Shown: in pieces, positions 4,251 to 61,287 of the stretch
Position numbering within the stretch: position 1 is the first letter of the stretch
Layout: every line of letters begins with the position of its first letter
Source: Mobula hypostoma
Lineage: Eukaryota
Direction: 5' to 3'
DNA length: 64,000 bases
Assembly: GCF_963921235.1 (NCBI RefSeq)
Contig: NC_086109.1
Location: 12,028,001-12,092,000, forward strand
Notes under the pieces: generated by a model
Databases searched by the model: none
Told to the model about the DNA's origin: nothing
Seen by the model: the letters and a program-made list of their open reading frames with translations, nothing else
Made by a program: the position numbers and the translations under genes

Positions 4251-4359
4251 CTTTCGACAGAACTGGATCTTGCAGTAGCATTGAATCTTATTTCTGAATT
4301 TTCAGAATGTGAAGTCCTTGTTAATTCTGTGGCCGAAGTTTCACAAGTATATCTACATT
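4251..4359 (-). pseudogene. Stalk exon of the CD300/pIgR-like pseudogene
   Basis: ctctacag acceptor; phase 1-to-2 open frame ECRYTCETSATELTRTSHSENSEIRFNATARSSSVE; homologous to 20003-20162; donor is GCACAA where the paralog has GTACAA. Confidence 0.8.
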
Positions 4360-5200: not shown

Positions 5201-5889
5201 GCTTCTACTTTCTCAGTGTGAATAGAAATGGCTGTTGGGAGGAAAGTCGGCAGAGATTTTATTCTGATGAAGAGCTTGTGATGTAGAATGCTAACCGTTT
5301 CTCATTCTGCGGATGATGCCTGACGTAGTGCGCAGTGGCCACTCTGGTGAATGATATCTGTAATCTGTCAGGTAGGGTGCTGTGCACAATCCTGATTTGA
5401 TGGAGACAGATGTGAGAGCACGGAGGAATATCTGGAGAAACTTCGGAAATGCCTGCTTCGCTGCCACTGCTGCTGTGTGATCCAGAATCTCCGGAGGAGA
5501 AGGCCCCGAGTCCTTGGCTTTGCTTGTTTCTCGGTGGCCGGGGCGGGGTCAAAGTGTTCGGCAGAGAATGGTGCTCAGGAAGCTGTGTTGGAGGGGCCAT
5601 CCCACTGTATTTTGATCAATGTTAATTCAAGCAACTGCAGTAATGTTGATGGCTCTGATAGTGGAAGGATTGAAAATGTAGAGCCAGTTCATTAGTGCCT
5701 TTTACCTTTGTATACCCAAATGAAGTATTTTCAAACCATCTATACTTAATGCAAAGGAATCTCCAGAAGACACTTGGCACGTGAGAGATTTGCTGGTGAC
5801 AGATATCGAAGCACAGGAGCAGACATGGGTTTTGTGGGAAAGAATTAAACATTCAAACACTGAATGAACATCTGAAAATCACTCTTCTT

Positions 5890-6811: not shown

Positions 6812-7130
6812 CATCCTATATGTGTAGACATAAATAAACTCTCAGATCCAGTCCTTGTGTTGTAGTTCCACAGCTGTACCATCCTGTATCTCCAAAGCAA
6901 AGATCTTCCATAGTAACAGTAAATTTTCTCTGTTCCTGGTTGTCTGTGATTGACACTCGTCCCCTTTGTCTGTGTTGCTACTCGTTTCCACTAAAACTGA
7001 ACTTGTTTATTCCATCTGTGGCACTGATACTTGCTGTGTGAGCATTATGTTTCTTCATAGTGACAATCGATCTTGATCACGCTTCCCACAGCTCTTTTTA
7101 AATCTCCCTCTGCCCAAAATGCACCTGAAA
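6812..7130 (-). pseudogene. Decayed IgV exon, CD300/pIgR/MDIR-like pseudogene
   Basis: ctcag|TTTCAGGT acceptor and G|GTAGGT donor. Reads (V)SGAFWAEGDLKRAVGSVIKIDCHYEET*CSHSKYQCHRWNKQ...[32 protein letters not shown]...LHI*D. It has two in-frame stops and two 1-nt deletions (319 vs 321 nt), and the conserved KYWC Trp is now Gln. Confidence 0.92.
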
Positions 7131-12789: not shown

Positions 12790-13900
12790 ACTTGACCTTT
12801 GCAATTCACAACAGGGTACAACTCACACATTTTAGTGGTGTGATCAATCGAGTCGAGTAAGGTGTTCTCCAAAGGGGTTGTCTGCTTGTGAGTCCTCAGG
12901 TGGATGTAGAGGCCAATCTGGGATGCATACTATATGTTCTGGTGCACGTGGGCAAGACTAAGAGGTTCCTATGGGTAGTTGCTGGGTCTTGTGGTTGTTC
13001 GTTCCCTCCTTTTGCAGCTGCAGCTTGTTCTCTGCAGCACCACGGAGGTTACTGTCATATAATGCATCTCCCTCTTGAACAGATTTCTCCTAGTGCATCT
13101 ATTGAATGCAATATCTACCCAGTTTTTAGATGTAATCCTGAATTTCTTCAGGCTGATTTCGATATTATCTTTGAAGCTGACATTCCTTCAATCGGGAGTA
13201 AAGGATCTGTTTGGGGAGATGTGAGTTAGGCATCCACATAACATGACCTATCTATCTAGTTGGTGTTCCTTTATTGTAGTGGAGATGCTGTTCATGTTAG
13301 CCTCCTCTGGTACACTGGTGTTAGTGTGTCTGTCCTTCCAGCTGATCCTCAAAACCTGTCATAAGGTTCTTTGGTGGTATTGCTCCAGGACTTTCAGCTG
13401 TCTACTGTAGGTGGTCCATGATTCAGCTCCATACAGTAATGTAGGAAGGTAGAATGCTCTATTGAACAAAAGTTTTGTTTAGACCTGTTTGTCACGTTTT
13501 TCAAAGACCCTTTTCCTTAATCTTCGATAGGCTCAGATAGCATGGCTCAGGCACAGGTTGATCTCTGAGTCAATGTCTGCTTTTGTGGAAAGAATGCTGC
13601 CAAGTTAGGGAAAGTGATCTATATTTTCAAGGGTGATATCATCAACTTTTATGGAGGGTTGGATAAATGGTGGCGGCTGGTATAGGACCTGTGTATTTTT
13701 TCATATTCAAAACAAGATTCAGGGCCCTATATGCCTTGGCAATGGCATTCAGGATGCATTGGAAGTCTTCTTCAGAGTGTGTTGTGATGGTGCTGTCTTC
13801 CACATACTGAAGCTTCATGATAGTAATGGTGCTGACATTGTTCTTGGCCTGGAACCGGTTCAGGTTGAAAAGTCTGTTGTCCATGATTGGGATTCACTGT
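12790..13900 (-). mobile_element. RTE/BovB-like LINE 3' fragment
   Basis: ORF 13642-13884 DNRLFNLNRFQAKNNVSTITIMKLQYVEDSTITTHSEEDFQCILNA plus downstream RTE remnants. Confidence 0.75.
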
Positions 13901-15633: not shown

Positions 15634-15723
15634 TTAGCGCAAAACTTCCGCACGGTTGGTGAAATCTGGGATCCTTCTCTCTTTCTCTTGGACCAGGCGG
15701 TGAGGATCTGATTGATCAGATCT
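15634..15723 (-). CDS. Candidate terminal cytoplasmic exon ([29 protein letters not shown])
   Basis: Strong acceptor ttttgcttttatag; phase 0 matches the TM-exon donor; TAA at 15634-15636; minus-strand AATAAA at 15229-15234. There is no homology support. Confidence 0.5.
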   Translation of the reverse strand, partial: RSDQSDPHRLVQEKERRIPDFTNRAEVLR

Positions 15724-18700
15724 CTATAAAAGCAAAAGTGAAATTATCAGATTGATTGACACAGGGAACCATGCAATACTGCATGATTCTATGTGCCTGT
15801 GACTTTGCACTCATTGCACTGTTACAAACACATGCTTGTGCATTGGGCAGTAAAGTGCACTTTGACTTTGATTTACATTTCATGTGGGCACCTTGCAACA
15901 GAATTCTGTCTGAAACACAGTGTCCAATATATTTTCCTGTCGAGTACAGGACTTCATTCTACACATGGGCAGAGCGTGAAAGCCTCCTTACAGTATATCA
16001 TCTTCATGCAACTTTGTTTTGACAAAAGGTTAAACGTTCATATGTGAATGTTTTTTCCCTTTAAATGATCAGTATATTTGAATTAAATTGGAGTGAATGA
16101 GAATGAGAGGTATTGCACCTTGATAGAGGTGTAGTAGATGATAAGAGGCGTAAATCTAGTGCATAGCCAGAGACATTTTCCAAGGGCAGAAGTGTCTCAT
16201 ACGAGGGGGCATAATTTTAAGTTGATTGGAGGAACACATTGGGGAGACGTCAGAGGTAAGATTTTACGCAGAGGTTGTGGGTGCATGGAACGTCCTATCA
16301 GGTGTGGTGGTAGAGGCAGATACATTCGCAGCATTTAAGAAACTCTCAAAAAGATGCATGGATCACAGAGAAGTTGAAGCCCATATAAGAAGGAAAGGTT
16401 AGAGTAAGTTAAGAGGCCAGAACAACATCATAGACCAGATTCCATGTATTGTGCTGTAATGCTCTATGTTCTATGTTGTAATTCATGAAAACCATTCGGG
16501 AGCATCTACTGACCTGGACTTACCTTTTTATCTCTCGTGAACCATGTGACAGCGATAGTGCAGATCGCCAGCAGAGCAAAGAACAGCCAGCGTCCCACTT
16601 TCCATATCATGTAACTGAACAAAGGGGAAGAGATACAGAATCAGTGGGAGAAGAGGAAACACCTTTGTATTTCAAATATTTACCTCCTGGTTCCTCTGTG
16701 AAATCAGTGAAGTGGAGCAATAAAAGCAGCAAGGCCAGGGAAGTTCAGCTGGGAGATTAATTTTACGCTGGACTGAGGGAGGGAAGATAATCTATGATCA
16801 TCATTTGGAGATACAATTGCGGAAACACATACTGTATGCTGCGACAATAGATAATGTAGATAGATTTAGAAATGGCAAGGATCGAAATAATGAGGTTGGG
16901 TAACGATGAGCCTGGGGTTAATGTAATGTCATTGCATGGTACAATGATTTATAACAGTTAGCTATACCATTGTGGTTTAGTTCCTGCCACTATTTGTAAA
17001 GAGTTTGTACATTCTCTCTGAGACTGCATGAGGTTCCTCCGGGTGCTCCGGTTTCCTCCCATATTTTCAAGACATATGGTTGATGGTTAGTCGCTTGAGG
17101 GCATGCTATGTTGGCTCTGGAAGAATAGAAACACTAACAGACTGCCCAGCACAATCTTTGCTGGTTGGATTTGATGCAAAGTGATGCATTTGTCAGGAAA
17201 TGTAGATGAGGCTTGACCAAAATCAAGCAGCAGAGACAATTTTGCAGTAAATGCTACTCTACTAATAGACTGCAAAATAACAAGTCATGAGGTGCCATAA
17301 AACATGAAAGAGCGGAAAGTAAACACAACAAGCAAGCGAGGGATTGAAGGCTAGGAACAATTTGTTGAGGCCATCTGGTTTGATGAGTGAACAGGGACTG
17401 TGGATGAGAACTGGGTTAAATAGGCTGCAGGTAATGAGCCTAGAATGAGTGGCAGGTGAATTCTATTAGTTAGGTAAAGATTGGGAGGTTCCTGCATGTG
17501 CAGGCCTGACAGCATTTCAATGTATGTTTCAATGTACATGTGACAAATATAGACAAACTTGACAAAAGAGGACACAGCTCTTTGGAAGTTCGACAACGAA
17601 TCCTCGCAGACAGATTTTGTATGAAAGCTGATAAGTGATCCATAACTTATTGAAGAATGGAGTTGGGGAATGAAATACACAGACAAATAAGGATAATCAA
17701 AAAAAAAATCATAAAAGTAATCGGGGCATCTCAAAAAATCTCAGTATTCCTTGGGCACCATGCAGCGTAGTGGTTACCACGATGCTATTACAGCTTGAGG
17801 TGTCAAAGGTCAATTCTGATGTCTTTTGTGAGGGATCTCTATGTCCTCCCTGTGGAATGCATGGGTTTTCCCTCGGTGCTCTGGTTTCCGCCCAGAGTCT
17901 AGGGATGTATCAGTCAGTTCGTTAATTGGTCTTTGTAAATCATCCTGTGATTAGGCTTAGGTTAAATTGGGGGTCACTGGGTGGTGCAGTTCAAAGGGCT
18001 GGAAGGACCTATTCCACACTGTATCTCAGTAAATAGAATAAAGAAATAAATACAGTGGTAGGTCTGGAGATGGGGGAAGCAAGATCAATAATGTATAAGG
18101 GGCTCACTCGTAACACAATGGCTAAAGAGACCATGAAGGGAATTTGCAAATTTGAGCATTTAGAGCAAGGGTTCCAACCTTTTTTATGTCAGGACTAATA
18201 CCATTAAGGACTGGGGTCATGGACCCCAAGTTGTGAACTCCTGATTTAGAGGATAAATAACCCAGAACATGTAGGGAAGTTAAGATGAAGTGAGCTACAT
18301 AAAATGCATTTTATGATGATAATAGAGAAGGAAACAAATAAGAAGAAAATCAAATATGTAAGGGAAAAGCACATAGAACATAGAATAGTACAGCGAAGTA
18401 CAGGCTCTTCAGCCAAACATGTTTTATCAGCTCTTTAACCTATTCCAATATTAATCTAACCCTTCCCTCCCACATAGCCCTTCATATTTCTTACTTCATG
18501 TGCCTATCTTAAATCTTCCAAACGCACTTGTCTCTACCAGTACCCCAGCAGCACATTTCAAGCACTTGCCACTCTCTGTGTAACAGACCTTCCTCTGATA
18601 ACCCATTATACTTTTCCCGAGACCTAACAGTATGTCCACTTATATTAAAGCTCAAAGTTCAATGTAAACATATACCTCAGGCTATACAACATTGAGATTC

Positions 18701-21700
18701 ATTTTTCTTGCGGGCATAGTCAATAAATCTATAGAATAATAACCATAACAGAATCAATAAAAGACCACCAAACTTTGGTGTTCCACCAGGGTGCAGAGCA
18801 CAGCAAACTGTGCAAACACATAAAGAAAGAAATAATAATAAATATATTAGCAATAACAATCAAGAATATGAGATGATGAATCCTTGAAAGTGGGAACATT
18901 GCATGCAGAAAAAACTCAAGTATCGATACTATTCAATTTACTAATGCCTCCTATCATCTTATACACCTCTATCAAGTCACCTCTTAACCTCCTTATGTCC
19001 AAAGATAAAATTCCTAGCTCACTCATCCCATCCTCATAAAACATGTTGTCTATACTAGGCAGCTTCCTGGTAAATCTCTTCTAAAGCTTTTCCATCTTTC
19101 CTATATGGAGTGATTCGAACTGAAGACAATACTTCAAGTGTGGACGAACCAGAGTTTTATAGAGCTGCAACAATTACCTCAAGCCTCTTAAATTAACTTA
19201 TATGACTAATGAAAGCCAACACACAATGTTCTTTGTTAGCCACCCTATCAACCTGCATGGCAACATTCTGTTTATGTCTGGGGGCAAAGGTCTTTAGGCA
19301 TACCAAGACAAGATAGGGAGGCAAACGAAAGATTCTAGGGTGACATCTTCTATTGGACTGCCTGAGCCAAATTGTCTTTTTACTTTAACATATCTCCAAG
19401 GTAACCCCATTTTAATGCTGTGTAGTCCAGAGCAATAATACTGACCTCACCCATGCCCACTCCCCAGGAACATCTTTCCTGCAGATGCAGTGACCAGCAT
19501 TGTTACCTTAACCGACCATGAAATTTGCCATCAGGGTCACATCAGAGTTGGTCATGGCAAGGCAAAGCAGCATTGCTGAGATTTGACAAATACAACCGAC
19601 ATCAAGCCGTACATCCTCTTAGGGGTGGCAAAGGGAGGGATCTGCTCTTATTTCTCAACAAGCAAAGCAGCCTGATACAAATCCAGCACTCTCTCCATTT
19701 TGATAAGTGAGATTCTAAAATAACGCTGTCAACTTTCATGTTTAAATCAACACAAGATATTTACCTTGGAGCCTCAGGATTGAAATGTGTGAGAAAGAGC
19801 AGTGTATAGGCCTCTCCCATTATTTCAGTGTGTTTGAAGTCAATACTCTCACAGGTACAACGCCAGCAAAGAAAGGTGGGTGTACCACCCTCCTCCTGCC
19901 CCTCCCATTCCCCACCCTCCGCAAGCCAGCACCACCAATAACATCACATATCTCGTAGGGCAGTAGTGTCAATCAAAACATTGACAAATGAGAACATTGT
20001 ACCTTTTGGCAGAAATGGATTGTATGTTTTTTCTTCGAGTATCATTGAAATTCATTTCTGAAGTTTCAGAATGTGAAGTCCTCGCTGAATCTGTTACAGA
20101 AGTTTCAGAATGTGAAGTCCTCATTGATTCTGTTACAGAAGTTTCAGAAATGTATCCAGATTCTGTAGAGATAAGTCATAGTCATAGTCATAGTCAAAGT
20201 CATACTTTATTGATCCCGGGGGAAATTGTTTTTTGTTACAGTTGCACCATAAATAATTAAATAGTAATAACACCATAAATAGTTGAATAGTAATATGTAG
20301 ATTATCCCAGGAAATAAGTCCAGGACCAGCCTATTGGCTCAGGGTGTCTGACCCTTCAAGGGAGGAGTTGTAAAGTTTGATGGCCACAGGCAGGAATGAC
20401 TTCCTATGACGCTCTGTGCTGCATCTCGGAGGAATGAGTCTCAGGCTGAATGTACTCCTGTGCCCACCCAATACATTATGTAGTGGATGGGAGACATTGT
20501 CCAAGATGGCATGCAGCTTGGACAGCATCCTCTTTTCAGACACCACCGTCAGAGAGTCCAGTTCCATCCCCACAACATCACTGGCCTTACGAATGAGTTT
20601 GTTGATTCTGTTGGTGTCTGCTACCCTCAGCCTGCTGCCCCAGCACACAACAGCAAACATGATAGCACTGTTGATAAAATCCAGTTTCAACAGCTTCCCT
20701 GTGCAAGTAGATGAGAAGATAGCTTGCAGAATAATGACAGCAGGTTGTGTGTTTGGATTTCCAGAAAGCATTTGATAAGGTCCTACACATGTCAGATTAA
20801 AAATTAGAGAACTAATATGGATAGAGAACCAGTTGGCAGACAGAATTCAGACAGCAGGAATGAAGAGCTCTGCTTTTGACTGGCAGTGAGTTTATAGAGG
20901 GAAACTGTTGTATTCAGTGTTATAAACCCAATCATCTCATTGTATATCAATAACATAGTCCAGAGGAATTAAATGCAATATATCAAGTTTGCAGAGGGCA
21001 CAAAGTCAGGTGACAATGTGTACTGTGAGGAGTTTCTTAAGCTTGATTTGGACTGGTTCAGAGAATCAGCAAATGAATGGCAGATGCATCATTCTGTAGA
21101 CAAATGTGAAGTGATCCACTTCAGTGTGAGCAGTCTTAGTTCAAAGATTTCTGCTTATTTTAGAGTAAAAAAACATACAAATATTCATCAATCTACAAAC
21201 GTAAATAAAGAGCTGAGAAATGATGCTAAAGGGAAATCAATGCTAAAGGATGTAATGTAAAGGAATAAAAAGAAATGAAACATAGTGCTTCTGAAAAATC
21301 CATCACTTTTATCGATGAGATAAAGAAAATTTCTTAGATAGTGATTAATTAATTGATAATTAAAACAATTACATCATGTGGGTAATGTGCTAAATCTTAG
21401 CCAATGAAAAATGACAGAAGTGATAAACTATTTGTTTAGTTGCTATACCTCTTTCTGCCAGTGAGATTGCCAGTATTTGCTCTGATGGTCAGATATCTGT
21501 CACATGTTTGGAGGGTCTTGAGAGAAAGTGTTTGGTTTCTGTGACCTGCTTCAGCAAGGGAGTACTTTGGTGCTGCTGTTTGCATGGAGGCAGTGGGTGA
21601 AGCCCAGAAGTCTCAGGAAGGTGGATGTCCACACAAAGGAGCTGGAGGAACTCAGCAGGTCAGGCAACATCTCTGGGGGAAAATGCACGTGTGATGTTTC

Positions 21701-23776
21701 TGACTGAGATGCTTCACCAGGACTGGAAAGAATGAGGGGCGAGGATTGAATAAAAGGGTGGGGAGAGGAGGAGGAGCATAAGCTGACAGCTGATAGCTGA
21801 ATCTAGGTGAGAGGAGGAAGGCAGGAAGGTGGGATGGAGCAAAAAAGAGTATGATAAATTGGGAGGTGATAGGCGGAAGAGGCAAAAGGTTAAAGAAGGA
21901 GGAATCTGTTTGGAAAGGACAGTAGACTATGGAATAGAATAAGTAGGTGGGGCACTAGAGGGAGAAAGTGTGGGCACAAGGGCAGTGGAGGGGAATGACA
22001 AGGAGTAAAAGGGCAAGATGGATAAAGGAAAACAAAAGGATTCTGATGGGACAAGATCTCATCAGATTTCACTTAATCTGATTCCCACCGGTAATAGGTG
22101 GATGAAGAGGCTGGATGTTTCGGAGTGGATGGTCAGTGGGTTCTGGGGGTGGGGGCTCAGAGCACATTTATGGGGATACAGGTGGGGGTGCGGGTTAGGA
22201 GGGACTGATTGAGATAGGCCAGGGATTGGACTGGCCTGCTTTGGAAGAACTGAATGCAGTCTGTTGAGCTCTGGGAAATGATTCCCTTTTTATGGTTTTC
22301 CGGTACTTAGCCCATGAGCAACAGGATTCTCGCTGATCTGTTATGGCTGGATTATTAGTTTTACTCTGAATGCAAACCTCTGATAGGGTGACATTCCATA
22401 TGTTTCTGAGGCAGGAAAATTGTGCTGATCCTCCCAATAGAAATTGGTGTCCATCAGTGGGTCAGACCCCACACTGGGTGATTCCCTGATTCCTGTTCAC
22501 TCCTCACAAGACTCTGCACTGCAGTGGTCCCTCGGGATGTGGGAGCTGTCGTAACCCTTCACAGTGAAGACACTGAGCAGATATTTATGTGGGGGCAGAA
22601 AGTAAATCCGTGGTAAATGTACCAACAGATTCCTGTAGATATAGGCGGAACATTGGACAGTGACCATGAATTGGGTGAGATGAACATGAGTTGGGTTTCC
22701 TGACTCCTGACAACTCATCGTAAGGCTCTGCCCTGTTGCTGAGCCTCAGGATATCAATGCTACCCTGAACATTCCCAGAGAAAACTTGGATCAGACATTT
22801 CAGAGGAGACATAAAATCAGTCACTGCACAACATACCGTCAGATACTTGCAGATGTACGTTAAGCATTGGATCATAACCTGATGTTGCAATTGCACAGCT
22901 GTACCATCCTGTATCTTCAGAGCGAAGATCCACCATTGTAACTGTAAATATCCTCCGTTCCGGGTTATCTGTGATTGATACTCGTCCACGCTGTCCGTGA
23001 TGCCCATTTGTTTCCACTAAAACTGAACAATGACGACTCCATCCATGGCACCAATACTTTGTGTGTGAGCTGTACATTGCTTCATAGTGACAATCGATTG
23101 TGATCGCTCTTCCCACAACTCCTGTTACACTTTTCTCTGCCCACAATGCACCTGAAACTGAAGAGAACATGTTTCCGTAAATCAGAATCAGGTGTAATAT
23201 GAACAGCACATGTTGTGAAATTTGTTAATTTGTGGCAGTACTACAATGCAATACAGGATAATATAGAACCAAAAACTGTCCATTGCAGTATTTATACACG
23301 AGGGCTGATTGATAAGTTCATGGCCTGGGGTAGAAGGAGATGAGCTATTAACTTCAAACTTTCCGCGTTATCAGTCAAAGAGTTGAACTGCACGTGCATG
23401 TAACGAGAGTGTCTTGGACCTCCAGGTGGTCCAGAGCAGGGGTGATTGATACGTTTGTGGCCTAAGGTAGAGGGAGATGAGTTATACAGCTCTCGTTACA
23501 TGCAAGTGCAGTTCAACTCTTTGAGTGAAAATGCAGAAGGTTTGAAGTTAATAACTCATCTCCTTCTACCCTAGGCCACAAACGTATCAATCACCCCTGC
23601 TGTGGGCTACTTTCTGGAGGTCCAAGACACCGACTTCTATAAAGAAGGGATCCTATGCTCCACGACTGCTGGACTAAGTGTGTAAATGTAGGAGGGGACA
23701 ATGTTGAAAAATAAATGTGCTAGGTTTTCTAAAATTGACTCCTTCTACCTTAGGCCACAAACTTATCAATCATTCC

Positions 23777-23826
<50 letters not shown>

Positions 23827-26800
23827 ATATATATAAAATAGTTAGATTAAATATGCAGTGAAAAAACAGAAACAAAAATATGTGACAAAGTGTTCATGGG
23901 TTCACTGTCAGTTCAGAAATCGGATGGCAGAGGGGATGTAGACCCTTGGGATATTGGAACTGTCCTGACCCTTCGCAGTGAAGACACAGAAGATATTTTA
24001 GTGGAGAACAGAAAGTAAAGCCCTGATAAATGTACCATCAGATTCTTGAAGATATAGGTGGAATATTGGACCATGACCATGAATTGGGTGAGATCAACAT
24101 GAGTTGGGTTTCTTGTCTGCTGCGTATTCCTAGTAGGACTCTGCACGACTGCGGAGCCTCGGGGATATCAATGATACCTTGGCCGTTCCTAGAGAAAACT
24201 TGGATCAGACATTTCAATAGAGACATAAAGTCAATCACTGCGTTACATACCGTCAGACACTTGCAGATGTACGTTAACCATTGGGTCATAACCTGATGTT
24301 GTAATTGCACAGCTGTACCATCCTGTATCTTCAGAGCGAAGATCCTTCATTGTAACAGTAAATATCCTCCGTTCCGGGTTATCTGTGATTGATACTCGTC
24401 CACGCTGTCCGTGATGCTCGTTTGTTTCCACTAAAACTGAACAATGACGACTCCATCCATGGCACCAATACTTTGTGTGTGAGCTGTACGTTGCTTCATA
24501 GTGACAATCGATTGTGATCGTTCTTCCCACAACTCCTGTTACATTTTTCTCTGCCCACAATGCACCTGAAACTGAGGAGAACATGTTTCCGTAAATCAGA
24601 ATCAGGTGTAATATCAACAGCACATGTTGTGAAATTTGTTAACTTTGTGGCAGTACTACAATGCAATACAGGATAATATCGAACAAAAAACTATCCATTG
24701 CATTAATAATATACGAGGGATGATTGATAAGTTTGTGGCCTAAGGTAGAAGGAGTCAGTTTTAGAAAACCTAGTACATTTATTTTTCAACATAGTCCCCT
24801 TCTACATGTACACACTTAGTCCAGCAGTCGTGGAGCATACGCATCCCTTCTTTGTAGAAGTGGTTCACACCAGTGGTGATTGATAAGTTTGTGGCCTGAG
24901 GTAGAAGGAGATGAATTATTAACTTCAAACATTCTGCATTTTCACTCAAAGAGTTGAACTGCACGTGCATGTAACGAGAGTGTCTTGGACCTCCAGGTGG
25001 TCCAGAGCAGGGGTGATTGATAAGTTTGTGGCCTGAGGTAGAAGAAGATGAGTTATACAGCTCTCGTTACATGCACTTGCAGTTCAACTCTTTGAGTGAA
25101 AATGCAGAAGGTTTGAAGTTAATAACCCATCTCCTTCTACCTCAGGCCACAAACATATCAATCACCCCTGCTGTGGGCCACCTTCTGGAGGTCCAAGACA
25201 CCGACTTCGACAAAGAAGGGATCCATATGCTCCACAACCGCTGAACTAAGTGTGTAAATGTAGGAGGGGACTATGTTGCAAAATAAATGTGCTAAGTTTT
25301 CTACAATTGGCTCCTTCTACCTTAGGCCACAAACTTGTCAATCAACCCTTGTGTGTGTATATGTATTAAGTAGTTAGATTAAATATGCAGTGAAAAAACA
25401 GAAACAAAAATATGTGACAAAGTGTTCATGGGTTCACTGTCAGTTCAGAAATCGGATGGCAGAGGGGATGTAGACCCTCGGGATATCGGAACTGTCCTGA
25501 CCCTTCGCAGTGAAGACACAGAAGATATTTTAGTGGGGAACAGAAAGTAAAGCCCTGATAAATGTACCATCAGATTCTTGAAGATATAGGCGGAACATTG
25601 GACCACGACCATGAATTGGGTGAGATCAACATGAGTTGGGTTTTTTGACTGCTGCGTATTCCTAGTAGGACTCTACACTACTGCGGAGCCTCGGGGATAT
25701 CAATGATACCTTGGCCGTTCCTAGAGAAAACTTGGATCAGACATTTCAATAGAGACATAAAGTCAATCACTGCGTTACATACCGTCAGTTACTTGCAGAT
25801 GTACGTTAAACATTGGGTCATAACCTGATGTTGTAATAGCACAGCTGTACCATCCTGTATCTTCAGAGCGAAGATCCTTCATTGTAACAGTAAATATCCT
25901 CCGTTCCGGGTTATCTGTGATTGATATTCGTCCACGCTGTCCATGATGCTCATTTGTTTCCACTAAAACTGAACAATGACGACTCCATCCATGGCACCAA
26001 TACTTTGTGTGTGAGCTGTACGTTGCTTCATAGTGACAATCGATTGTGATCGCTCTTCCCACAACTCCTGTTACATTTTTCTCTGCCCACAATGCACCTG
26101 AAACTGAGGAGAACATGTTTCCGTAAATCAGAGTCAGGTTTAATATCAACAGCACATGTTGTGAAGTTTGTTAATTTGTGGCAGTACTACAATGCAATAC
26201 AGGATAATACAGAACAAAAAAAAACTGTCCATTGCAGTATTTATATATATTGAATAGTTAGATTAAATATGCAGTGAAAAAACAGAAATAAAAATAAGTG
26301 ACGAGGTGTTCTTGTGTTCAATGTCCATTCAGAAATTGGATGCAGAGGGGACGAAGCTGTTTCTGAAATTCTGAATGCATGCTTTCAGGCTTCTGTACCT
26401 CTTTCCTGAAGGTAACAATGACAAGAAGGCATGTCCTGGGTGGCAGAGGTCCTTTTTGAGGCACTGTTTCTTGAGGATGTCTTGTAAACTGTGGAGTCGA
26501 GTATCCGTGATGGGTCTGACTAATTTGACAACTCTCTGCAGCTTACTTTGATGCTGTGCAGTATCAGCGTTCCCTCCCGCTCCCCCCCCCCACCCGGCCC
26601 ACATCCCCAAATACCAGACAGTGACGCAGCTAGTCAGAATGCTCTCCACAGTACATATGTAGATATTTAGGTGACATACCAATTCTTCTCAAAATCCTAA
26701 TTAAACACAGCCACTGTCTTGCCTTCTTCACAGCTGCATCAATTTGCTGGGGTCAGATTACGTCCTCAGAGATACTAATGCCCAGTAACCTGAAATTGCT

Positions 26801-29800
26801 CACTCTCTCCACTTCCAATCCCTCTACAAAGACTGGTGTGTGTACCCTCCTCTTACCTTTTCTCAAGGCCACAATCAGTGAGTGCAAGGACGTTGCCACA
26901 ACACCTCTCCACTTGCTGGTATATCTACTCCTGCACACCCTCTCATTTCCACCTGATATTCTGCCAACAATGGGTGTATCGTCAGCAGATTTATAGATGA
27001 CATTTGAGCTGTGCCCAGCCACTCTGTCAGGGGTGTAGAGAGAACATGAGCAGCGAGCTAACCACACGTCCCTGAGGTGAACCACTGTTGATTGTCAGTG
27101 AGGTGGAGTTGTTATTTCCAGATTGAGGTCTTCCATTTGCAGAGGGAGGTACAGAAGCCCAGGTTCTATAACTCTTCAAAAAGCACTGTAGGAAGGACGG
27201 TGTTAAACACTGAGCTATAGTGAATAAATAGCATGCTGACATAGGTATTTTATTGTCCAGGTGATTCAAGGCTGCATGGACAGCCAATGAGATTGCATCC
27301 ACTGTAGATCTATTGTGGCAATAGGCAAATTGCTGTGGTGCAGGTCCTGGCCGAGGCAGGAGTTGATTCTGGCCACGACCAGCTTCTCAAAGTACTTCAT
27401 CACGTAGATGTGAGTGCGACTGGATGATAATCATTCAGCCAGCTCACACTGGTGTTCTTGGGCACTGGTATAATTGTTGCCCTTTCGAAGCAAGTGGGAA
27501 TTTCTTGCTGTAGCAATGAGAGATTGAAAATGTCTTTTAACTTTTTCAATCTCTCGAAATTTCTTGAGTGGACAAAAAGAAACTGCTTCGCAAACAACTT
27601 TCTGGAGCAACTCACAAAGCAATGGAGGAAATCAGTTGGTCAGCCAACATCTGTTGCAGTTTCAGGTCGGAAACCTATGTCAGGTCAATAACCTCAGCCG
27701 TCCCATCCCCTGACAGATGCTGAAGTCCTGACCCACTGAGTTCCTCCAGCTGATAGTTTGTCACTCCAAATTCTGGAGTCCACAGATCTTTGTATCCTCA
27801 AAATCTTTTCAATATTCAGCGTGAATATCCTGGCTGTGCTGGTGAATATCCATCCCTTTACAAAGACCCCAATCAGACATTCACCCCTGTTTGTGGTCAG
27901 AAGGTAGGAGGATTGGCAGTCACCAATGTTTGGCTTATACCCTTGCCGTGGAACAGTTGCATCTTCAATGCGTGGCTTCTAACGGTATCTCCCAGCTTTC
28001 TACTCAGCTTCTTCCTCAGATCCCAACTTTTCCAAGGACATTCAGTGCATGTATTCCCCTGAATGGTGAGAGACCACAGACTGAGGGAGACAAGAGACAC
28101 CGTCTACTTCTTGGGGAGCAGGGTGAGGGGAGGGGTCATTGAGGGCAGTTGATTTCTATTCACCTGAAATTTGAGGGCAGAAGAATGTACTATATATACA
28201 GAAAATGTTGAATCCCAAAATAACATTAGGGTCTTCATACATTCTGGTTTTGTTCTTGGCAAAAACGGACATTGACATATGTCACCAGAATTTCCTGTCA
28301 ACCAAAAAATAAAATATTCAGTCCCACTTCTGTTTTCCTGGAGCAGGATCATAGAACTTATGACTTAAGAGGCCATTCAGCCCTTTCTTCAGTACTGGTT
28401 GAAGAAGCGCTGTATGTTCTGGTCCTCCCTCTAACACTGGGTCCTTTGCCCGGCAGGTGACAGCACTTCAGATACACCTTCCAGGCTCAGTTTACTGTGC
28501 TGAAGGTTCCTGACTCTACCAACTGTTCAGGAAGAGCATTTCAGAATGCTACCGCTTACTCACTTCTCCATGGATCATCACCTTGTGGTGGTGGAGAGGC
28601 TTGTGATTTCCTGACATCCTGGGAGCGATGCCATCCGGTATGGTCCTCCATGGCAGAAAGGTCAAGGGGGAAGTTCCAGTCAAAGATTAATCTAAACAAG
28701 ACCTTGACAGTGGAGCCAATGAAAGATGACTAGTAGTGTTCCATAATGATCTGTGCTGGAACAACTTATTTTTACTTTATATGTCAATGACCACTTATTT
28801 TTCCTGTTTCATTCCTGTAGAATTAGGTAGCATGCCTGCAGGGTTAGTGCTTTGTTCAGGGTGTCAGATGTGGGAATCCTGGGAGACTTCCAGCCTCCCT
28901 GATGGTCACATCTGCACCAGGTGCACCGAGTTGCAGCTCCTCAGAGACCGTGTTAGGGATCTGGAGCTGCAGCTTGATGACCTACTGCTTATCAGGGAAA
29001 GTGAAAAGGTGATAGACAGGAGCTACAGGGAGGTAGTCATCCCTAGGCTACAGGGGTCAGAAAGCTGGGTCACTGTCAAGAGAGGGAAGGGAAATGCCCA
29101 GATAGTGGAGAGCACCCCTGTGGCTGTCCCCCTCAGCCACAAATATCTTGTTCTGGATGCTGTTGAGGGGGATGACCTGACCGGGGATGCCCACGGTGAC
29201 CGGGTCTCTGGCACTGAGCCTGGCACTGTTGTGCAGGAGAGAAGGAGGGAGAAGAGAAATGCAGTAGTCGTGGGGGATTCCTTAGTCAGGGGAACAGACA
29301 GGAGATTCTGTGAGCCTGACAGAGATACCCGCATGGTGTGTTGCCTCCCAGGTGCCAGGGTACGGGATGTCTCGGATCGGGTCCTGAATATTCTAAAGGG
29401 GGAGGGTGAGCAGCCAGTTGTCTTGGTACATATTGGTACCAATGACATAGATAGGACAAAGGAGGAGGTCCTGAAGAGAGATTTCCAGGAGCTAGGAAGG
29501 AAGCTGAGAAGCAGGACCTCCAGTGTAGTAATCTCGGGATTGCTACCTGTGCCACGTGCTAGCGAGGGCAAGAGTAGTCGGATCAGGCAGATGAATGCCT
29601 GGCTGAGAGACTGGTGTAGGGGGCAGGGCTTCAGATTCTTGGATAATTGGGATCTTTTCTGGGGGAAGTATGACCTGTTCAAGAAGGACAGGTTACACCT
29701 GAACCCGAAGGGGACCAATATCCTGGCGGGAAAGTTTAATAGAGCTGTTAGGGAGGGTTTAAACTAATTTGGCAGGGGGATGGGAACCGGAATGATAGAG

Positions 29801-32800
29801 CGGAGGAAGGGTAAAACAGAAATAAATCTAAGATAGTGAGCAGTAAAGATGTCAGGAAAGACAGGCAGGTGATGGGGCAAATTTGTAGCCATTGGGATGA
29901 GTTGCAGTGCAATAAAGTTGCAGTGGAATCAAAGCAAAAAGTATCAAATACTGGTCTTAAGGTGTTGTACTTAAATGCACGCAGCATAAGGAATAAGGTG
30001 GATGATCTTTTTGTACAGCTACAGATTGGCAGGTGTGATATTGTGGCCATCACTGAGACGTGGCTAAAGGATACATGTCTCTGGGAGCTGAACGTCCAAG
30101 GATACACGGTGTATCAGAAGGATAGGAAGGTAGACAGAGGGGGAGGGGTGGCTTTATTGGTAAGAAATGATATTAAATCATTAGAAAGAGGTAATGTAGG
30201 ATTGGAAGGTGCAGAATCTTTATGGGTTGAGCTAAGAAATAGCAGGGGTAAAAGGACCCTGATGGCAGTTATTTATAGGCCTCCAAACAGCTGCAGGGAT
30301 GTGGACTACAAATTACAACTGGAAATAGAAAAGGCTTGTCAGAAGGGCAGTGTTATGATAATTGTGGGGGATTTTAACATGCGAGTAGATTGCGAAAATT
30401 AGGTCAGCACTGGATCTCAAGAGAGAGAATTTGTAGAATGTCTGCGAGATGGCTTTTTAGAACAGCATGTTGTTGAGCCTACTAGGGGATCGGCTGTACT
30501 GGATTGGGTATTGTGTAATGAACCGGAGGTGAAGGAACCCTTAGGAGGCAGTGATCATAATATGATTGAGTTCACTGTGAAATTAGAAAAAGAGAAACCG
30601 AAATCTGTGTCGGTATTTCAGTGGAGTAAAGGAAATTACAGTGGCATGAGAGAGGAACTGGCCAAAGTTGACTGGAAAGAGACACTGGCGGGAAAAACAG
30701 CAGAGAAGCAGTGGCTGGAGTTTATGCAAGAAATGAGGAATGTGCAAGACGGGTATATTCCAAAAAAGAAGAAATTTTCGAGTGGAAAAAGGATGCAACC
30801 GTGGTTGACAAGAGAAGTCAAAGCCAAAGTTAAAGCAAAAGAAAGGGCATACAAGGAAGCAAAAATTAGTGGGAAGAGAGAGGATTGGGAAGTCTTTAAA
30901 ACCTTACAAAAGGAAACTAGAAGGTCATTAAGAGAGAAAAGATTAACTATGAAAGGAAGCTAGCAAATAATATCGAAGAGGATACTAAAAGCTTTTTCCA
31001 AGTATATAAAGAGTAAACGACAGGTGAGAGTAGATATAGGACCGATAGAAAATGATGCTGGAGAAATTGTAATGGGAGATGAGGAGATGGCAGAGGAACT
31101 GAACGAGTATTTTGCATCAGTGTTCACTGAGGAAGACAGCAGTATACCGGACACTCAAGGGTGGCAGGGAAGAGAAGTGTGCGCAGTCACAATTACGACA
31201 GAGAAAGTACTTAGGAAGCTGAATAGGCTAAAGGTAGATAAATCTCCTGGACCAGATGGAATGCACCCTCGTGTTCTGAAGGAAGTAGCTGTGGAGATTA
31301 CGGAGGCATTAGCGATGATCTTTCAAAAGTTGATAGATTCTGGCATGGTTCCGGAGGACTGGAAGATTGCAAATGTCACTCCGCTATTTAAGAAGGGGGC
31401 AAGGAAGCAAAAAGGAAATTGTAGAACTGTTAGCTTGACATCCGTAGTTGGGGAGTTGTTGGAGTCGATTGTCAAGGATGAGATTACAGAGTACCTGGAG
31501 GCATATGACAAGATAGGCAGAAATCAGCATGGATTCCTTAAAGGAAAATCCTGCCTGACAAACCTATTACAATTTTTTGAGGAAATTACCAGTAGGCTAG
31601 ACAAGGGAGATGCAGTGGATGTTGTATATTTGGATTTTCATAAGGCCTTTGACAAAGTGCCACACATGAGGCTACTTAACAAGATAAGAGCCCATGGAAT
31701 TACGGGAAAGTTACATACGTGGATAGAGCATTGGCTGATTGGCAGGAAACAGAGAGTGGGAATAAAGGGATCCTATTTTGGTTGGCTGCCGGTTACCAGT
31801 GGTGTTCCGCAGGGATCAGTGTTGGGGCCGCTTCTTTTTACATTGTACATCAACGATTTAGATTATGGAATAGATGGCTTTGTGGCTAAGTTTGCTGACG
31901 ATACGAAGATAGGTGGAGGGGCCGGTGGTGCTGAGGAAACGGAGAGTCTGCAGAGAGACTTGGATAGATTGGAAGAATGGGCAGAGAAGTGGCAAATGAA
32001 GTACAATGTTGGAAAGTGTATTGTTATGCACTTTGACAGAAAAAATAAACGGGCAGACTATTATTTAAATGGGGAAAGAATTCAAAGTTCTGAGATGCAA
32101 CGGGACTTGGGAGTCCTCGTAACGGATACCCTTAAAGTTAACCTCCAGGTTGATTCAGTAGTGAAGAAGGCGAATGCAATATTGGCATTCATTTCTAGAG
32201 GAATAGAGTATAGGAGCAGGGATGTGATGTTGAGGCTCTATAAGGCGCTGGTGAGACCTCACTTGGAGTACTGTGAGCAGTTTTGGTCTCCTTATTTAAG
32301 AAAGGATGTGCTGACGTTGGAGAGGGTACAGAGAAGATTCACTAGAATGATTCTGGGAATAGGAGGGTTAACATATGAGGAACGTTTGTCTGCTCTTGGA
32401 CTGCATTCCTTGGAGTTTAGAAGAATGAGGGAAGACCTGATAGAAACATTTCGAATGTTAAAAGGCATGGACAGAGTGGATGTGGCAAAGTTGTTTCCCA
32501 TGATGGGGGAGTCTAGTACGAGAGGGCATGACTTAAGGATTGAAGGGCGCCCTTTCAGAACAGAAATGCGAAGAAATTTTTTTAGTCAGAGGGTAGTGAA
32601 TCTATGGAATTTGTTGCCATGGGCAGCAGTGGAGGCCAAGTCATTGGGTGTATTTAAGGCAGAGATTGATAGGTATCTGAGTAGCCAGGGCATCAAAGGT
32701 TATGGTGAGAAGGCAGGGGAGTGGGACTAAATACGAGAAAATGGATCAGCTCATGATAAAATGGTGGAGAAGACTCGATGGGCTGAATGGCCTACTTCTG

Positions 32801-35800
32801 CTCCTTTGTCTTATGGTCTTATGGTCTTATGATAGAATTGATGACTTTGTTGCAAAGTTTGTAAATGATATGAAGATAAGTGTGGGGGGGCAGGTAGTTT
32901 TGAGGAAGTAGAGAAGCTACAGATGGACTTACGCAGTTGAGGACAATGAGAAAAGAAGTGGCAGATGGAATACAGTGTTGAGAATTGTATGTTCATGCAC
33001 TTTGACAGAAGAAATTAAAGGGTAGACTATTTTCTAAATGGAGAGAAAATACAAAAAAAAACTGAGACACAAAGGGAATTGGGAGTCCTTCTACAGGATT
33101 CCCTAAAGGTTAATTCGTCGGCTGAGTTAATGGTGAGGGAGGCAAATGCGATGTTAGCATTTATTTTGAGAAGACTAGGATATAACATCAAGGATGTAAA
33201 GTGAGGTTTTATAAAGCACTGCTAAGGTATCACTTGGAGTATTATGAGACGTTTTGTTCCCCTTATCCAAGAAGGGATGAGCTGACGTTGGAGAAGGTTC
33301 AAAGGAGTTTCACAAAAATGAATCTGGGATTGAAAGGCTTGTCATATGAACAGTGTTTGATGGCTCTCAGCCTCTATGCACTGGAATTCATAGAAATGAA
33401 GGGTGACCTCATTGCAGCTTATCAAATGTTGAAAGGAATTTCTTTAGCTAGAGAGTGGTGGATCTGTGGAATTTATTACCACAGGCAGCTGTGGAGGTCA
33501 AGTCATTGGGTATATTTAAGGCAGAGGTTGAAAGATTCTTGATTAGTCAGGGCATGAAGGGTTATGGGGACGAGGCAGGAGACTGGAACTGAGAAAAATG
33601 GATCAGACACAATGAAATGGCAGAGCAGACTCAAAGGGCCGAATTCTGCTCCTATATCTTATGGCTTGACACAAGATGGTCAGCAGTTGGATCAGTGCTC
33701 TCGGCCCTGGGTTGGCGTTTGGACCCAGTCTGGTGCATTCGGCCCCAGGTGGGCAGTGCTCAGCCCTGAATCAGCGCATTCAGCTCCAGGTGGGTGGCGT
33801 CTGGTCCTGGATTGGAGGCATTAGGACCCAGGTCGGTGGTCACGCTTTACGGAAGGACTGAGTTCGTGTGGCTGCTCCCCTCGTATGCAGAGAAAAGACA
33901 TTTCTCATTTTCTGAGATTTGTCTGATTATTGGGCTGTCCTTTGTATTGATCTCCTTCAGTTTTGGTATTTTCTTGCTTGTGGTCAATTGGCAGGTGGGT
34001 GACCTGCTAATTTTTTTTGTGTGCAAGTGGGGGGTGGTAATTTGGTGCTACCATTGCTATTCTTTTCTGCGAATGAGTGAGTCGGGGATCGTTATGTGCA
34101 GAGAATCATTGATTTTTTTTTGCTGCAGAGGAGGGGGGAATTTTGGGGTCTGTAAGTTCTGTTTCTCTTCTTTTTCATGCTGGTTGGGGGTGGAGTTGAT
34201 GTCTTTTATTTCATCATCACCCATGGTCTTTCTGTATTTAATGGCTATCTGGAGTAGACAAATATCAGAGTTTACCGTACCTACTATATATACTTTGACA
34301 ATAAAATGAGCTATTATAGTCTTATGAAGACACATCACAATGGCAATGAAGGTGGAGGAGGGTTGTCGCAGTGGAGGGTCCCCAGTCATCTTGCATTCCA
34401 TACTGTTTGACACTGACCCAATCTAACAAGGATCAGCTTGTGTCTCCCATGCATCAGCCTCCACACATTGAACAAAGTCACACACAGGTCTTCTCCTTGA
34501 AGGGACTCCATGCTAACATCCCAGATTAACTCTGGTGGTGATCAGCAAGTGGCGTGAGGGGGCAGAATTGTCATTATATGGATCCTACTGACACCTGAGG
34601 ACCCACCAATAGACAACTCCTGAGGAGAACGTCACTCATGAGTCGAGTGATGACACTACTACTACTCCTGCCTGGAGAAAAGCTTTTTCATCAACTTTTA
34701 ACCTAAGACCCCTCTTTTCAACACTCACCTAAGTCATCAAAATTCAATCCATTCATGCTTTTGATGCCCATTATAATTTTTCACAACACAATTAAGTCTC
34801 CTCTCTGTCTCCTTAGTTTCAACAAAACAACCCCTGCCAATCCAATCAATCATCTGACTGAAGCGTTCAGTCCGAAGCACATTGTCACTAATTTCTTCTG
34901 CAGTCATCCCCAATGCATTCTTGTCTTTCTAGACAATTGGGCCTTGTTCCAGGGAAGGTGGGACCTGTTCCGACGGGACGGGCTGCACCTGAACTGGAGG
35001 GGGACTAACATCCTTGCAGGAAGGTTTGCTAGTGCTGCTCTTGGGGGTTTAAATAGATTTGCACGGGGAGGGGAACCAGAATGTTAGAGCAGATAATGGG
35101 GTGGAGGAGGATAAAGGTCATGTGAGAACTGCAAGTATAGTACATGGAGTAAAGCTAGATCTGACATATAAAGAGGCTTTGAGGAAAGAGAAGCAGAATA
35201 AACGGTGTAAAGGTAGTAAGGTAGAAGGGCTAAAGTGCATGTACTTCAATGCAAGAAGCATCAGGAACAAATATGATGAACTGAGAGCTTGGATACGTAC
35301 ATGGAATTATGATGTAGTGGCCACTACAGAGACTAGGCTGGCACTAGGGCAGGAATGGATTCTCAATATTCCTGGATTTCAGTGCTTTAAAAGGAATAGA
35401 GAGGGGGGGAAAGGGGAGGAAAGGTGGCATTACTGGTCAGGGATATTATTACAGCTACCGAAAGGGTGGGTAATGTAGCAGGATCCTCTTTTGAATCAGT
35501 GTGGGTAGAAGTCAGGAACAGGAAGGGAGCAGTTACTCTATTGGGGGTATTCTATAGGCCCCCTGGTAGCAGCAGAGATAGAGGAGCAGACTGGGAGGCA
35601 GATTTTGGAAAGGTGAAAAATAACAGGGTTGTTATCATGGGTGACTTTAACTTCCCTAATATTGATCGGTACCTGATTAGTTCCAATGGTTTAGACAGGG
35701 CAGAGTTTGTTAGGTGTGTCCAGGACGGATTCCGGTCACAGTATGTTGACAGGCCGACAAGGGAGAGGGCCATATTAGATCTAGTATTAGGCAACAAACT

Positions 35801-38800
35801 GGGTCAGGTCATAGATCTCTCAGTGGGTGAGCATCTGGGGGACAGTGACCACTGCTCCCTGGCCTTTAACATTATCATGGAAAAGAATAGAATCAGAGAG
35901 GACAGGAAAATTTTTAACTGGGGAAAGGCAAATTATGAGGCTATAAGGCTAGAACTTGCGGGTGTGAATTGGGATGATGTTTCTGCAGGGTAATGTTCTA
36001 TGGACATGTAGTTGATGCTTAGGGATCTCTTGCAGGATGTTAGGGATAAATTTGTCCTGGTAAGGAAGATAAAGAATGGTAGGGTGAAGGAACCATGGGT
36101 GACAAGTGAGATGGAGAATCTAGTCAGGTGGAAGAAGGCAGCATATATGAGGTTTAGGAAGCAAGGATCAGATGGGTCTATTGAGGAATATAGGGTAGCA
36201 GAAAAGGAGCTTAGGAAGGGGCTGAGGAGAGCAAGAAGGGGGCATGAGAAGGCCTTGGTGAGTAGGGTAAAGGAAAACCCCAAGGCATTCTTCAATTATG
36301 TGAAGAACAAAAGAATGACAGCAGTGAAGGTAGGACCGATTAGAGATAAAGATGGGAAGATGTACCTGGAGGCTGTGGAAGTGAGCGAGGTCCTCAATGA
36401 ATACTTCTCTTCGGTATTCACCAACGAGAGGGAACTTGATGAAGGTGAGGACAATATGAGTGAGGTTGATGTTCTGGAGCATGTTGATATGAAGGGAGAG
36501 GAGGTGTTGGAGTTGTTGAAATACATTAGGACGGATGAGTCCCCAGGGCCTGACGGAATATTCCTCAGGCTGCTCCACGAGGCGAGGGAAGAGATTGCTG
36601 AGCCTCTGGCGAGGATCTTTATGTCCTCGTTGTCCACAGGAATGGTACCGGAGGATTGGAGGGAGGCGAATGTTGTCCCCTTGTTCAAGAAATGGTAGTA
36701 GGGATCGTCTGTGTAATTATAGACCAGTGAGCCTTACGTCTGTAGTGGGAAAGCTGTTGGAAAAGATTCTTAGAGACAGGATCTATGGGCGTTTAGCGAA
36801 TCATGGTTTGATCAGGGACAGTCAGCATGGCTTTGTGAAAGACAGATCGTGTCTGACAAGCCTGAAAGAGTTCTTTGAGGAGGTGAGCAGGCATATAGAT
36901 GAGGATAGTGCAGTGGATGTGTTCTACATGGATTTGAGTAAGGCATTTGACAAGGTTCCACATGGTAGGCTTATTCAGAAAGTCAGAAGGCATGGGATCC
37001 AGGAAAGTTTGGCGAAGTGGATTCAGAATTGGCTTGTCTGCAGAAAGCAGAGGGTCATTGTGGAGGGAGTACATTCGGATTGGAAGGTTGTGACTAGTGG
37101 TGTCCTACAAGGATCGGTTCTGGGACCTCTACTTTTCGTGATTTTTATTAACGACATGGATGTGGGGTTAGAAGAGTGGGTTGGCAAGTCTGCAGATGAC
37201 ACAAAGGTTGGTGGTGTTGTGGAAAGTGTAGAGGATTGTCAAAGATTGCAGAGAGACATTGATAGGATGCAGAAGTGGGCTGAGAAGTGGAAGATGGAGT
37301 TCAACCCAGAGAAGTGTGAGGTGGTCCACTTTGGAAGGATAAACTCCAAGGCAGAATACAAAGTAAATGGCAGGATACTTGGTAGTGTGGAGGAGCAGAG
37401 GGATCGGGGGCTACATGTCCACAGATCCCTGAAAGTTGCCTCACAGGTAGATAGGGTAGTTAAGAAAGCTTATGGAGTATTAGCTTTCATAAGTTGAGGG
37501 ATAGGGTTTAAGAGTCATGGGGTAATGATGCAGCTCTATAAAACTCTGGTTAGGTCACACTTGGAGTACTGTGTCCATTTCTAGTCGCCTTACTATAGGA
37601 AGGATGTGGAAGCATTGGAAAGGGTACAGAGGAGATTTACCAGGATGCTGCCTGGTTTAGAGAGTATGCATTATGATCAGAGATTAAGGGAGCTAGGGGT
37701 TTACTCTTTGGAGAGAAGGAGGATGAGACGAGACATGATAGAGGTATACAAGATATTAAGAGGAATAGATAGAGTGGACAGCCAGTGCCTCTTCCCCAGG
37801 GCACCACTGCTCAGTACAAGAGGACATGGTTTTAAGGTAGGGGTGAGAAGTTCAAGGGGGATATTAGAGGAAGGTTTTTTACTCAGAGAGTGGTTGGTGC
37901 GTGGAATGCACTGCCTGAGTCAGCGGTGGAGGCAGATACACTAGTGAAATTTAAGAGACTACTAGACAGGTATATTGAGGAATTTAAGGTGGGGGGGTTA
38001 TATGGGAGGCAGGGTTTGAGGGTCGGCACAACATTGTGGGCCGAAGGGCCTGTACTGTGCTGTACTATTCTATGTTCAAGACATGAACATAACCAGACTG
38101 GTCTAATACCCTGGAGGACAGGATCTTGATTGAGGTGTTGGTGCATTTGGATGATCTTAAAGTGTTCGGGTCCACCTCGGAGGAACATGAAGCGGGGCTA
38201 CTGAGGGTGCTGGGCTGCCTGAAATCTGAAGGGTTAAAACTTTTCCTGGAAAAGTGCCAGTTCTGCAAGACATCTGTCACTTATGTTTGGCACATGGTCT
38301 CAAAGTTTGAAATAGCTTCAATAGAGTTGGTGACCATCTGGCCAAGGCCCCAGACCATCAGGGTCCACAGGCTACCTGTGATTGTCTGCCTCTGATTTCA
38401 GCCTGAAATACCAGCCAGGAAGTCAGATCATTGATGCCAATGCATTGTTCCAATGTGCACATGAAGGGCTGGACAGGAACAGAGAGTAGGAGAGCATTCC
38501 TGCCCCGGGAGTCAAAGCCACATGCCAGTTTTCCATCACGGTGAAGGCAGAGGAAAGGCAAGGGCAGAATCGAGCGGTAGATCTTTTGGGAGCTTGTCAT
38601 GGTGCTACTCCACGGGCTTACTGCATCCTGACTGCTCTGAAGACAAAGCAGTTGCCGGAATTGAGTCCTGGGGAAGTGGCAGCTGCTTAGAGAGATGACC
38701 CATGCATGGGCACCATCTGGTCAGCAGTTGTGGAAGGGGCCATGGCCCAAGTGGACGAGCTGAATCTCTCTGCTACTGAGTGGATGGCCCAGATTGGAGC

Positions 38801-47646: not shown

Positions 47647-47803
47647 GGGGGACTTCCGGTAGCGCTCATGGAGTGAAGTCGCGTTCTTGACTCGCTCCAT
47701 TACCTCTGAGTTTTTTCTCTCTATGGTCAGCTATACTTTAATTAACTATTAAGGCATCAATTTTTACAATACTTTGAATTAAACTGAATTCTCTGACAAT
47801 TGG

Positions 47804-61146: not shown

Positions 61147-61287
61147 NNNNNNNNNNNNNNNNNNNNNNNNNNNNNNNNNNNNNNNNNNNNNNNNNNNNNN
61201 NNNNNNNNNNNNNNNNNNNNNNNNNNNNNNNNNNNNNNNNNNNNNNNNNNNNNNNNNNNNNNNNNNNNNNNNNNNNNNNNNNNNNNN
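61147..61287. other. Assembly gap (141 N)
   Basis: Run of n. Confidence 1.

Follow-up and report, generated by a model that had tools for sequence, protein, structure and literature searches.

In the 64,000-nucleotide stretch of the Mobula hypostoma genome analysed here (assembly GCF_963921235.1, contig NC_086109.1, positions 12,028,001 to 12,092,000; hereafter the window, with positions counted from its first letter), the minus strand holds a gene with three consecutive and nearly identical immunoglobulin V-set exons, D1, D2 and D3. This three-V gene is an intact elasmobranch member of the MDIR family, of the type with a short tail and a charged transmembrane segment, and its V domain is of the CD300 type. 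We consider it probable that the gene is transcribed and encodes three serial V domains, a mucin-like stalk, a transmembrane helix containing Lys and Arg, and a short, motif-less tail.

The array is a direct repeat of three units across 22.5-26.35 kb, whose starts are 1532 and 1414 nucleotides (nt) apart. Each unit carries one open minus-strand V-set exon of 321 nt in phase 1-1; exons of this length, phase and spacing had been claimed in a preliminary description of this DNA, and both the repeat structure and the exon reading bear them out. Two acceptors are conceivable for the V exon: ag|GTGCA would give 315 nt, and cag|TTTCAGGTGCA, 6 nt further upstream, gives 321 nt. The longer form is preferred because relatives show ..PVSGALW.. 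at this place and because an RNA joint, described below, falls exactly on position 26103. The splice signals of the three copies (cag| acceptors and G|GTATGT donors) are practically the same and all intact. D1 and D2 differ at 8 nt and 4 amino acids, D2 and D3 at 12 nt and 7 amino acids, and D1 and D3 at 13 nt and 8 amino acids, reproducing the nucleotide counts and the two amino acid counts (4 and 8) given earlier. The exon ends are distinguished by the bases at positions -8 and -7 (AA, GT and AT), so that the three junctions can be discriminated. This amounts to 92-96% amino acid identity and 96-97.5% nucleotide identity over 321 nt, and since such likeness occurs three times, with the frame intact each time, chance is excluded as its cause. 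Among the V exons dN/dS is 0.28-0.63, with a dS of ~0.059 for every pair.

The differences that do exist fall partly in loops, so the three V sites are similar but not identical. Nine residues of the 106-amino-acid domain vary. Residues 27, 51 and 90 lie in the BC, C'C'' and FG loops, and residue 98, which is F, V and L in D1, D2 and D3, respectively, lies beside the FG loop within the predicted G strand (residues 97-105), where the preliminary description had placed it; the remaining variable residues are at framework positions or strand ends. The glycosylation sequon that was said to distinguish the copies is indeed NVT in D1 and D2 and reads SVT in D3.

The other exons were located by tblastn with relatives retrieved in a library-wide HMMER search, followed by inspection of splice sites. 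The leader exon was found with the N-termini of P0057 and P0002 and is the sole leader exon in the 64-kb window; we infer from its position that it belongs to the three-V gene, since, going downstream from the last exon of the neighbouring gene, one reaches this leader first. Two repeats of the SETSVTxSxRTSH type occur in the stalk exon. Joined, the seven exons give a coding sequence of 1341 nt and 446 amino acids without a stop and with canonical splice sites throughout, and the predicted protein reads leader-V-V-V-stalk-transmembrane-tail. The first intron, of ~18 kb, is filled with long interspersed nuclear elements (LINEs). A search of Rfam with 20-27 kb gave no match.

All three V exons match the Pfam V-set family (E values of 3e-13 to 9e-15, 50-55 bits against a gathering cut-off of 26), and their best sequence matches in the Protein Data Bank (PDB) are pIgR and CD300/CLM-1. 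D1 was modelled with AlphaFold from an alignment of 35 sequences (pLDDT 95.9), and the model superposes best on mouse CD300lf, with a TM-score of 0.92-0.96, a root-mean-square deviation of 1.1-1.2 Å and 40% identity, compared with a TM-score of ~0.83 and 27% identity for pIgR D1 and ~0.79 for NKp44 and TREM-1. The fold accords with the earlier designation of the gene as a CD300-like receptor. In the alignment, the B-F cysteines C22 and C87 and the D81/G83/Y85 residues of the DxGxYxC motif are invariant, the xDPxF motif in the FG loop is conserved, and C36 and C43, an additional pair of cysteines located in strands C and C', are at least 90% conserved. The mammalian CD300 family (CD300lf/CLM-1, CD300a and the activating members) has this extra C-C' pair too, as well as a stalk and a single transmembrane segment. 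Mammalian CD300 proteins have one V domain and the three-V gene has three. The activating members CD300b, CD300c and CD300e have a charged transmembrane segment and a short tail, as does the three-V gene.

The named relatives are elasmobranch proteins annotated as 'polymeric immunoglobulin receptor-like' and the cloned MDIRs of skate, which are recovered (MDIR2, 3 and 5) when the closest relative is used as query. V-domain identity is 68% to MDIR2, 64% to MDIR3 and 65% to MDIR5. MDIRs form a multigene family of activating and inhibitory receptors related to CD300, TREM, FCAR and pIgR (PMC3031540). The layout of the three-V gene, with a leader, three V domains, a stalk, a transmembrane segment with Lys and Arg and a short tail, is that of an MDIR. 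Cannon et al. in 2006 reportedly characterised MDIRs as type I transmembrane proteins with one to several immunoglobulin domains that are activating, inhibitory or motif-less.

Since its transmembrane segment is charged and its tail short, the three-V gene is, as judged from sequence, of the activating type and not a pIgR. It shares with pIgR several V-type domains in series, with three V exons in frame, and pIgR is its best multi-domain match in the PDB. However, the nearly identical domains here contrast with those of pIgR, which are diverged and old, and in place of an uncharged transmembrane segment and a long tail for sorting and transcytosis the gene has Lys and Arg in the membrane and a 29-amino-acid tail with no Tyr and no sorting or transcytosis motifs. 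With a transmembrane segment and tail of the wrong kind, the gene is rejected as a pIgR orthologue, its product is not a transcytosis receptor, and the gene does not help to decide whether cartilaginous fish have a pIgR. The ectodomain had been called pIgR-like, which is right as regards the number of domains but not for the fold, the membrane segment or the tail.

Evidence on expression comes from sequencing runs of M. hypostoma and a sister species, all available as contigs, whose depth is only indicative and is not a copy number. The RNA-like M. hypostoma runs X17 and X19 behave as RNA, since their depth is zero on intron bins free of transposable elements. D1 and D2 are transcribed in this species: record 16 of X17 matches 26029-26103 without mismatch, has D1-specific bases and continues for 13 more letters past the acceptor, and record 23 of X19 lies on 24303-24464 with one mismatch and is D2-specific. 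A word-index search with D2 returned two annotated single-V proteins only and no run-derived junction fragments. The sister species, ~2% divergent from the window in unique-flank contigs, is represented by a DNA run (X5) and an RNA-like run (X16) from one sample. A 256-nt contig of X16, of depth 49, directly connects the final base of a V exon (24251) with the initial base of a V exon (26103) and reads in frame as ..QVSD|VSGALW..; X5 does not contain this joint. It is plausibly a V-to-V splice in the sister species, and hence an instance of serial V-V splicing. As D1, D2 and D3 are all in phase 1-1 with intact splice sites, they would be expected to splice in series.

The DNA run speaks to the array itself. 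Record 32 of X5 spans the junction of units 1 and 2 (25375-25634) with 3 differences in 260 nt, which makes the tandem layout older than the species split and disfavours an artefact. In X5 the unique flanks have a depth of ~9-12, the junction contig 24 and the exon contig 33, values that match one, two and three collapsed copies, but this is suggestive only, contig depth not being a copy number.

Several observations weigh against the account of a transcribed gene with three serial V domains. The leader lies 18 kb upstream of D1 across LINE insertions, and we infer rather than observe its link to D1. The X16 joint is scored as going back, from a D2-like end to a D1-like start; we attribute this to ambiguous placement, given that the exon starts are identical over the first 27 nt and that the copies are those of another species, but a back-splice could also produce it. 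X16 is moreover flagged as 'probably DNA', and every run consists of contigs, none of raw reads. For M. hypostoma, the joints listed include no V-V, leader-V or V-stalk joint, the depth on D3 is only 2-2.5 in X17, and two X17 contigs on D1, which deviate from the window sequence or have a 1-nt gap, may derive from paralogues. The ligand, adaptor and avidity proposed below are argued by analogy. A word-index search with D2 returned two annotated single-V proteins only and no run-derived junction fragments.

The best-surviving alternative, though an unlikely one, is that the V exons are cassettes that are alternatively included, yielding mainly one-V or two-V isoforms that differ at positions resembling complementarity-determining regions (CDRs); little or none of the three-V form would be made, and the array would serve to diversify specificity instead of raising avidity. 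Any combination of exons keeps the frame, but no acceptor or donor among these practically identical signals looks weaker than the others. The M. hypostoma contigs seen cover single exons only, among the joints listed, whereas in the sister species the depth of the V-V joint (49) is near that of the exon (49-105). NCBI lists isoforms of differing length for related genes, yet serial V-V is found in cloned MDIR3 and in many annotated relatives. Also in keeping with cassettes, three of the nine variable residues are in CDR-like loops, and another, residue 98, lies next to CDR3.

It is considerably less probable that the gene is decaying or silent, with an array that unequal crossover generated incidentally in a cluster of rapid turnover, exons that look intact only through conversion or recency, and RNA contigs that stem from paralogues. 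A dead paralogue does lie 16 kb away, the introns are filled with transposable elements, including the 18-kb first intron, and some RNA contigs deviate from the window sequence. Nevertheless, each of the seven exons has an open frame and canonical splice sites, dN/dS is below 1, the copy-specific RNA contigs match D1 and D2 with 0 and 1 mismatches, and the array is retained in the sister species. That the array is an assembly artefact, whether a haplotype mosaic or a false duplication, is so improbable that we reject it: two haplotypes cannot give three copies, the units are 2.5-22% divergent with indels and unequal periods of 1414 and 1532 nt, the sole run of N (61147-61287) leaves no gap near the array, and DNA of another species crosses a unit junction.

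The three-V gene did not arise by the single recent triplication that had been proposed. Tandem multiplication of a V exon within one intact gene stands, but not as one recent event, since the downstream flank of D3 is 16-22% divergent and a sister species ~2% diverged already possesses a unit junction. Divergence changes along the unit. Over the 140 nt upstream of the exon, D1 and D2 are 6.6% divergent and D3 is 5.1-5.8% from either; over the exon the values are 2.5% and 3.7-4.0%; and over the 300 nt downstream they are 0-7% and 16-22%, with the homology of the D3 unit stopping ~300 nt downstream of the exon. The exon dS of ~0.059 lies well under the downstream-flank divergence of D3. A palindromic element with inverted repeats, resembling a miniature inverted-repeat transposable element (MITE), occupies matching sites in the D2 and D3 units, each ~140 nt upstream of the V exon, and the homologous site upstream of D1 (~26236/26237) is empty. 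The element has termini CACGAGGG..CCCTTGTG and a TA-rich target site, and it is a high-copy repeat, since its contig depth is very high in all runs, RNA-like ones included. A (TG)n run at ~23783-23823 trails the copy in the D2-D3 intron.

Two ages of flank divergence, together with the shared MITE-like insertion, point to an origin in two stages, an older duplication and a later unequal crossover. The simplest reading of the sequence would have four steps: an older duplication of a unit of ~860 nt (the V exon and its flanks); insertion of the MITE-like element in the intron separating the V exon pair; a phase, probably of gene conversion, in which exon and upstream flank became homogenised; and unequal crossover between the two units, which would have added a third copy before the split from the sister species, given D1 and D2 one downstream flank and copied the MITE-like element. 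A simple chimeric origin of D2, by crossover inside the exon, was also considered and rejected, because the informative sites of the exon interior are interleaved (8 with D1=D2, 4 with D2=D3, 3 with D1=D3 and 1 where all differ) and no single breakpoint is visible. The flanks, unlike the exon interior, do fit unequal crossover.

Repeated V exons are common in the MDIR family, and the three-V gene is a well-resolved example of them, not a new kind of receptor. The earlier view of it as a snapshot of a multi-domain receptor in the making fails on this account: 193 of the 243 retrieved relatives with a V domain have at least two, and nearly identical neighbouring domains are on record in annotations of several elasmobranchs and teleosts. 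The best within-protein V-V identity among relatives has a median of 73%, with the highest tenth at 98% or more. Annotations of cloudy catshark, basking shark and several ray-finned fishes also contain near-identical V domains that are directly adjacent. Tandem near-identical V domains are thus already visible in published MDIR cDNA and in public annotations. MDIR1-5 of the skate Rostroraja eglanteria share with the three-V gene the V-domain family and the MWIPILL.. type of leader. MDIR3 has a V1-V2 pair that is 88% identical, less alike than the V domains here (92-96%), joined at ..KVSD|VSGA.., the same type of V-to-V junction, and MDIR5 has the same ..WKVGRW.. type of transmembrane segment. 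MDIR3 is V-V-C2-V-C2 and MDIR2 is V-C2, whereas the three-V gene is V-V-V without a C2-type domain. Comparable arrays are annotated in the little skate Leucoraja erinacea, where a 'polymeric immunoglobulin receptor-like isoform X2' (P0017) has four directly joined V domains with a best pair 99% identical, and in the Atlantic stingray Hypanus sabinus, where P0035 has two directly joined V domains, 99% identical. Both are computational gene models of another V subfamily (~40% identity for P0017), and their C-terminal parts differ from that of the three-V gene.

The closest matches beyond the V domains are two proteins of the red stingray Hemitrygon akajei, P0098 and P0004, which match the three-V gene at 75-79% identity in the stalk repeats, charged transmembrane segment and tail. 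P0004 places V-V-C2-V on the matching stalk, transmembrane segment and tail. P0098 has a single V domain (leader-V-stalk-transmembrane-tail) with leader, stalk, transmembrane segment and tail of matching type, which counts in favour of the preliminary description. Its stalk is longer by several repeats, so stalk length, too, varies by repeat number in the family. Some public gene models of MDIRs look chimeric, and annotated domain counts therefore need care: the N-terminus of P0051 (Hemitrygon akajei) matches sequence like a transposable element and the transmembrane exon in another frame, at 16522-16614, 13744-13884 and 2282-2425 of the window, and P0010 (Mobula birostris) ends in sequence like a LINE open reading frame (ORF) 1.

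We propose that serial splicing would join the V domains of the three-V gene as ..QVxD|VSGALW.. and that the cell surface would then show three nearly identical CD300-like binding sites per chain. The charged transmembrane segment may recruit a signalling adaptor, as in activating CD300, TREM and FcR-gamma-coupled receptors. The ligand, to judge from CD300 and TREM, would probably be a lipid or another repetitive surface, on which serial sites could raise avidity or reach. It is doubtful, if conceivable, that gene conversion is still at work in two sister species, holding the serial V domains nearly identical, and that these are selected as a homo-trivalent chain; the sister-species exon contig has ~3x the depth of unique flanks, as if the copies were identical, although contig depth is not copy number. 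If this were true, exon copy number would tune the avidity of an adaptor-coupled CD300-type receptor, and V-exon copy number might vary between individuals. The three-V gene is a well-resolved case of a change in domain number in MDIR/CD300-like receptors, in which the unit boundaries, the dated MITE-like insertion, the empty site and the sister-species comparison together order the steps of the array. It could be used to test whether the copy number of a CD300-type V domain alters ligand avidity.

Table 1. Positions in the window of the exons, repeat features and neighbouring genes discussed in the text.
Feature	Position	Strand	Details
Leader exon	44100-44136	minus	ATG to phase-1 donor (GTGAGT), 12 amino acids + 1 nt
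V exon D1	25783-26103	minus	321 nt, phase 1-1
V exon D2	24251-24571	minus	321 nt, phase 1-1
V exon D3	22837-23157	minus	321 nt, phase 1-1; NVT sequon lost
Stalk exon	20003-20162	minus	Ser/Thr-rich, phase 1 to 2; tblastn with P0004 residues 373-425
Transmembrane exon	16524-16614	minus	30 amino acids; Lys and Arg in outer part of helix
Cytoplasmic tail exon	15634-15723	minus	29 amino acids, no tyrosine, ends in stop codon
Nested MITE-like palindrome	24713-25352		D1-D2 intron, ~140 nt upstream of D2; inverted repeats
MITE-like palindrome, matching site	23296-23820		D2-D3 intron, ~140 nt upstream of D3
Head-to-tail junction of units 1 and 2	25459-25483		D1 downstream flank meets upstream-flank segment; from repeat families and flank alignment
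Second unit junction	~23927-23951		From repeat families and flank alignment
Dead paralogue, V exon	6813-7124	minus	Single V exon, two 1-nt deletions, in-frame stop
Dead paralogue, C2-type exon	5586-5832	minus	
Dead paralogue, stalk-like piece	4262-4342	minus	
Upstream neighbour gene, 3' end	59395-59646, 63511-63636	minus	Last exon with three ITIM-like motifs (VVYTDL, IVYVDV, VTYADI)

The window holds two other MDIR-like genes (Table 1). One is the dead paralogue, which had been described as a pseudogene with a single V exon and does have just one; it also has a C2-type exon, unmentioned in that description, and the 64-kb window yielded no leader for it. The other is the upstream neighbour, whose last exon bears motifs resembling the immunoreceptor tyrosine-based inhibitory motif (ITIM). 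Since an inhibitory-type MDIR gene here adjoins one with a charged transmembrane segment and a short tail, the layout is that of paired receptors. Both the first intron of the three-V gene and the intergenic space are filled by LINE copies of CR1/L2-like and L1-like types (28736-33000, 35000-38000 and 47000-54700), among which is an open ORF2 of 1294 amino acids at 49317-53201.

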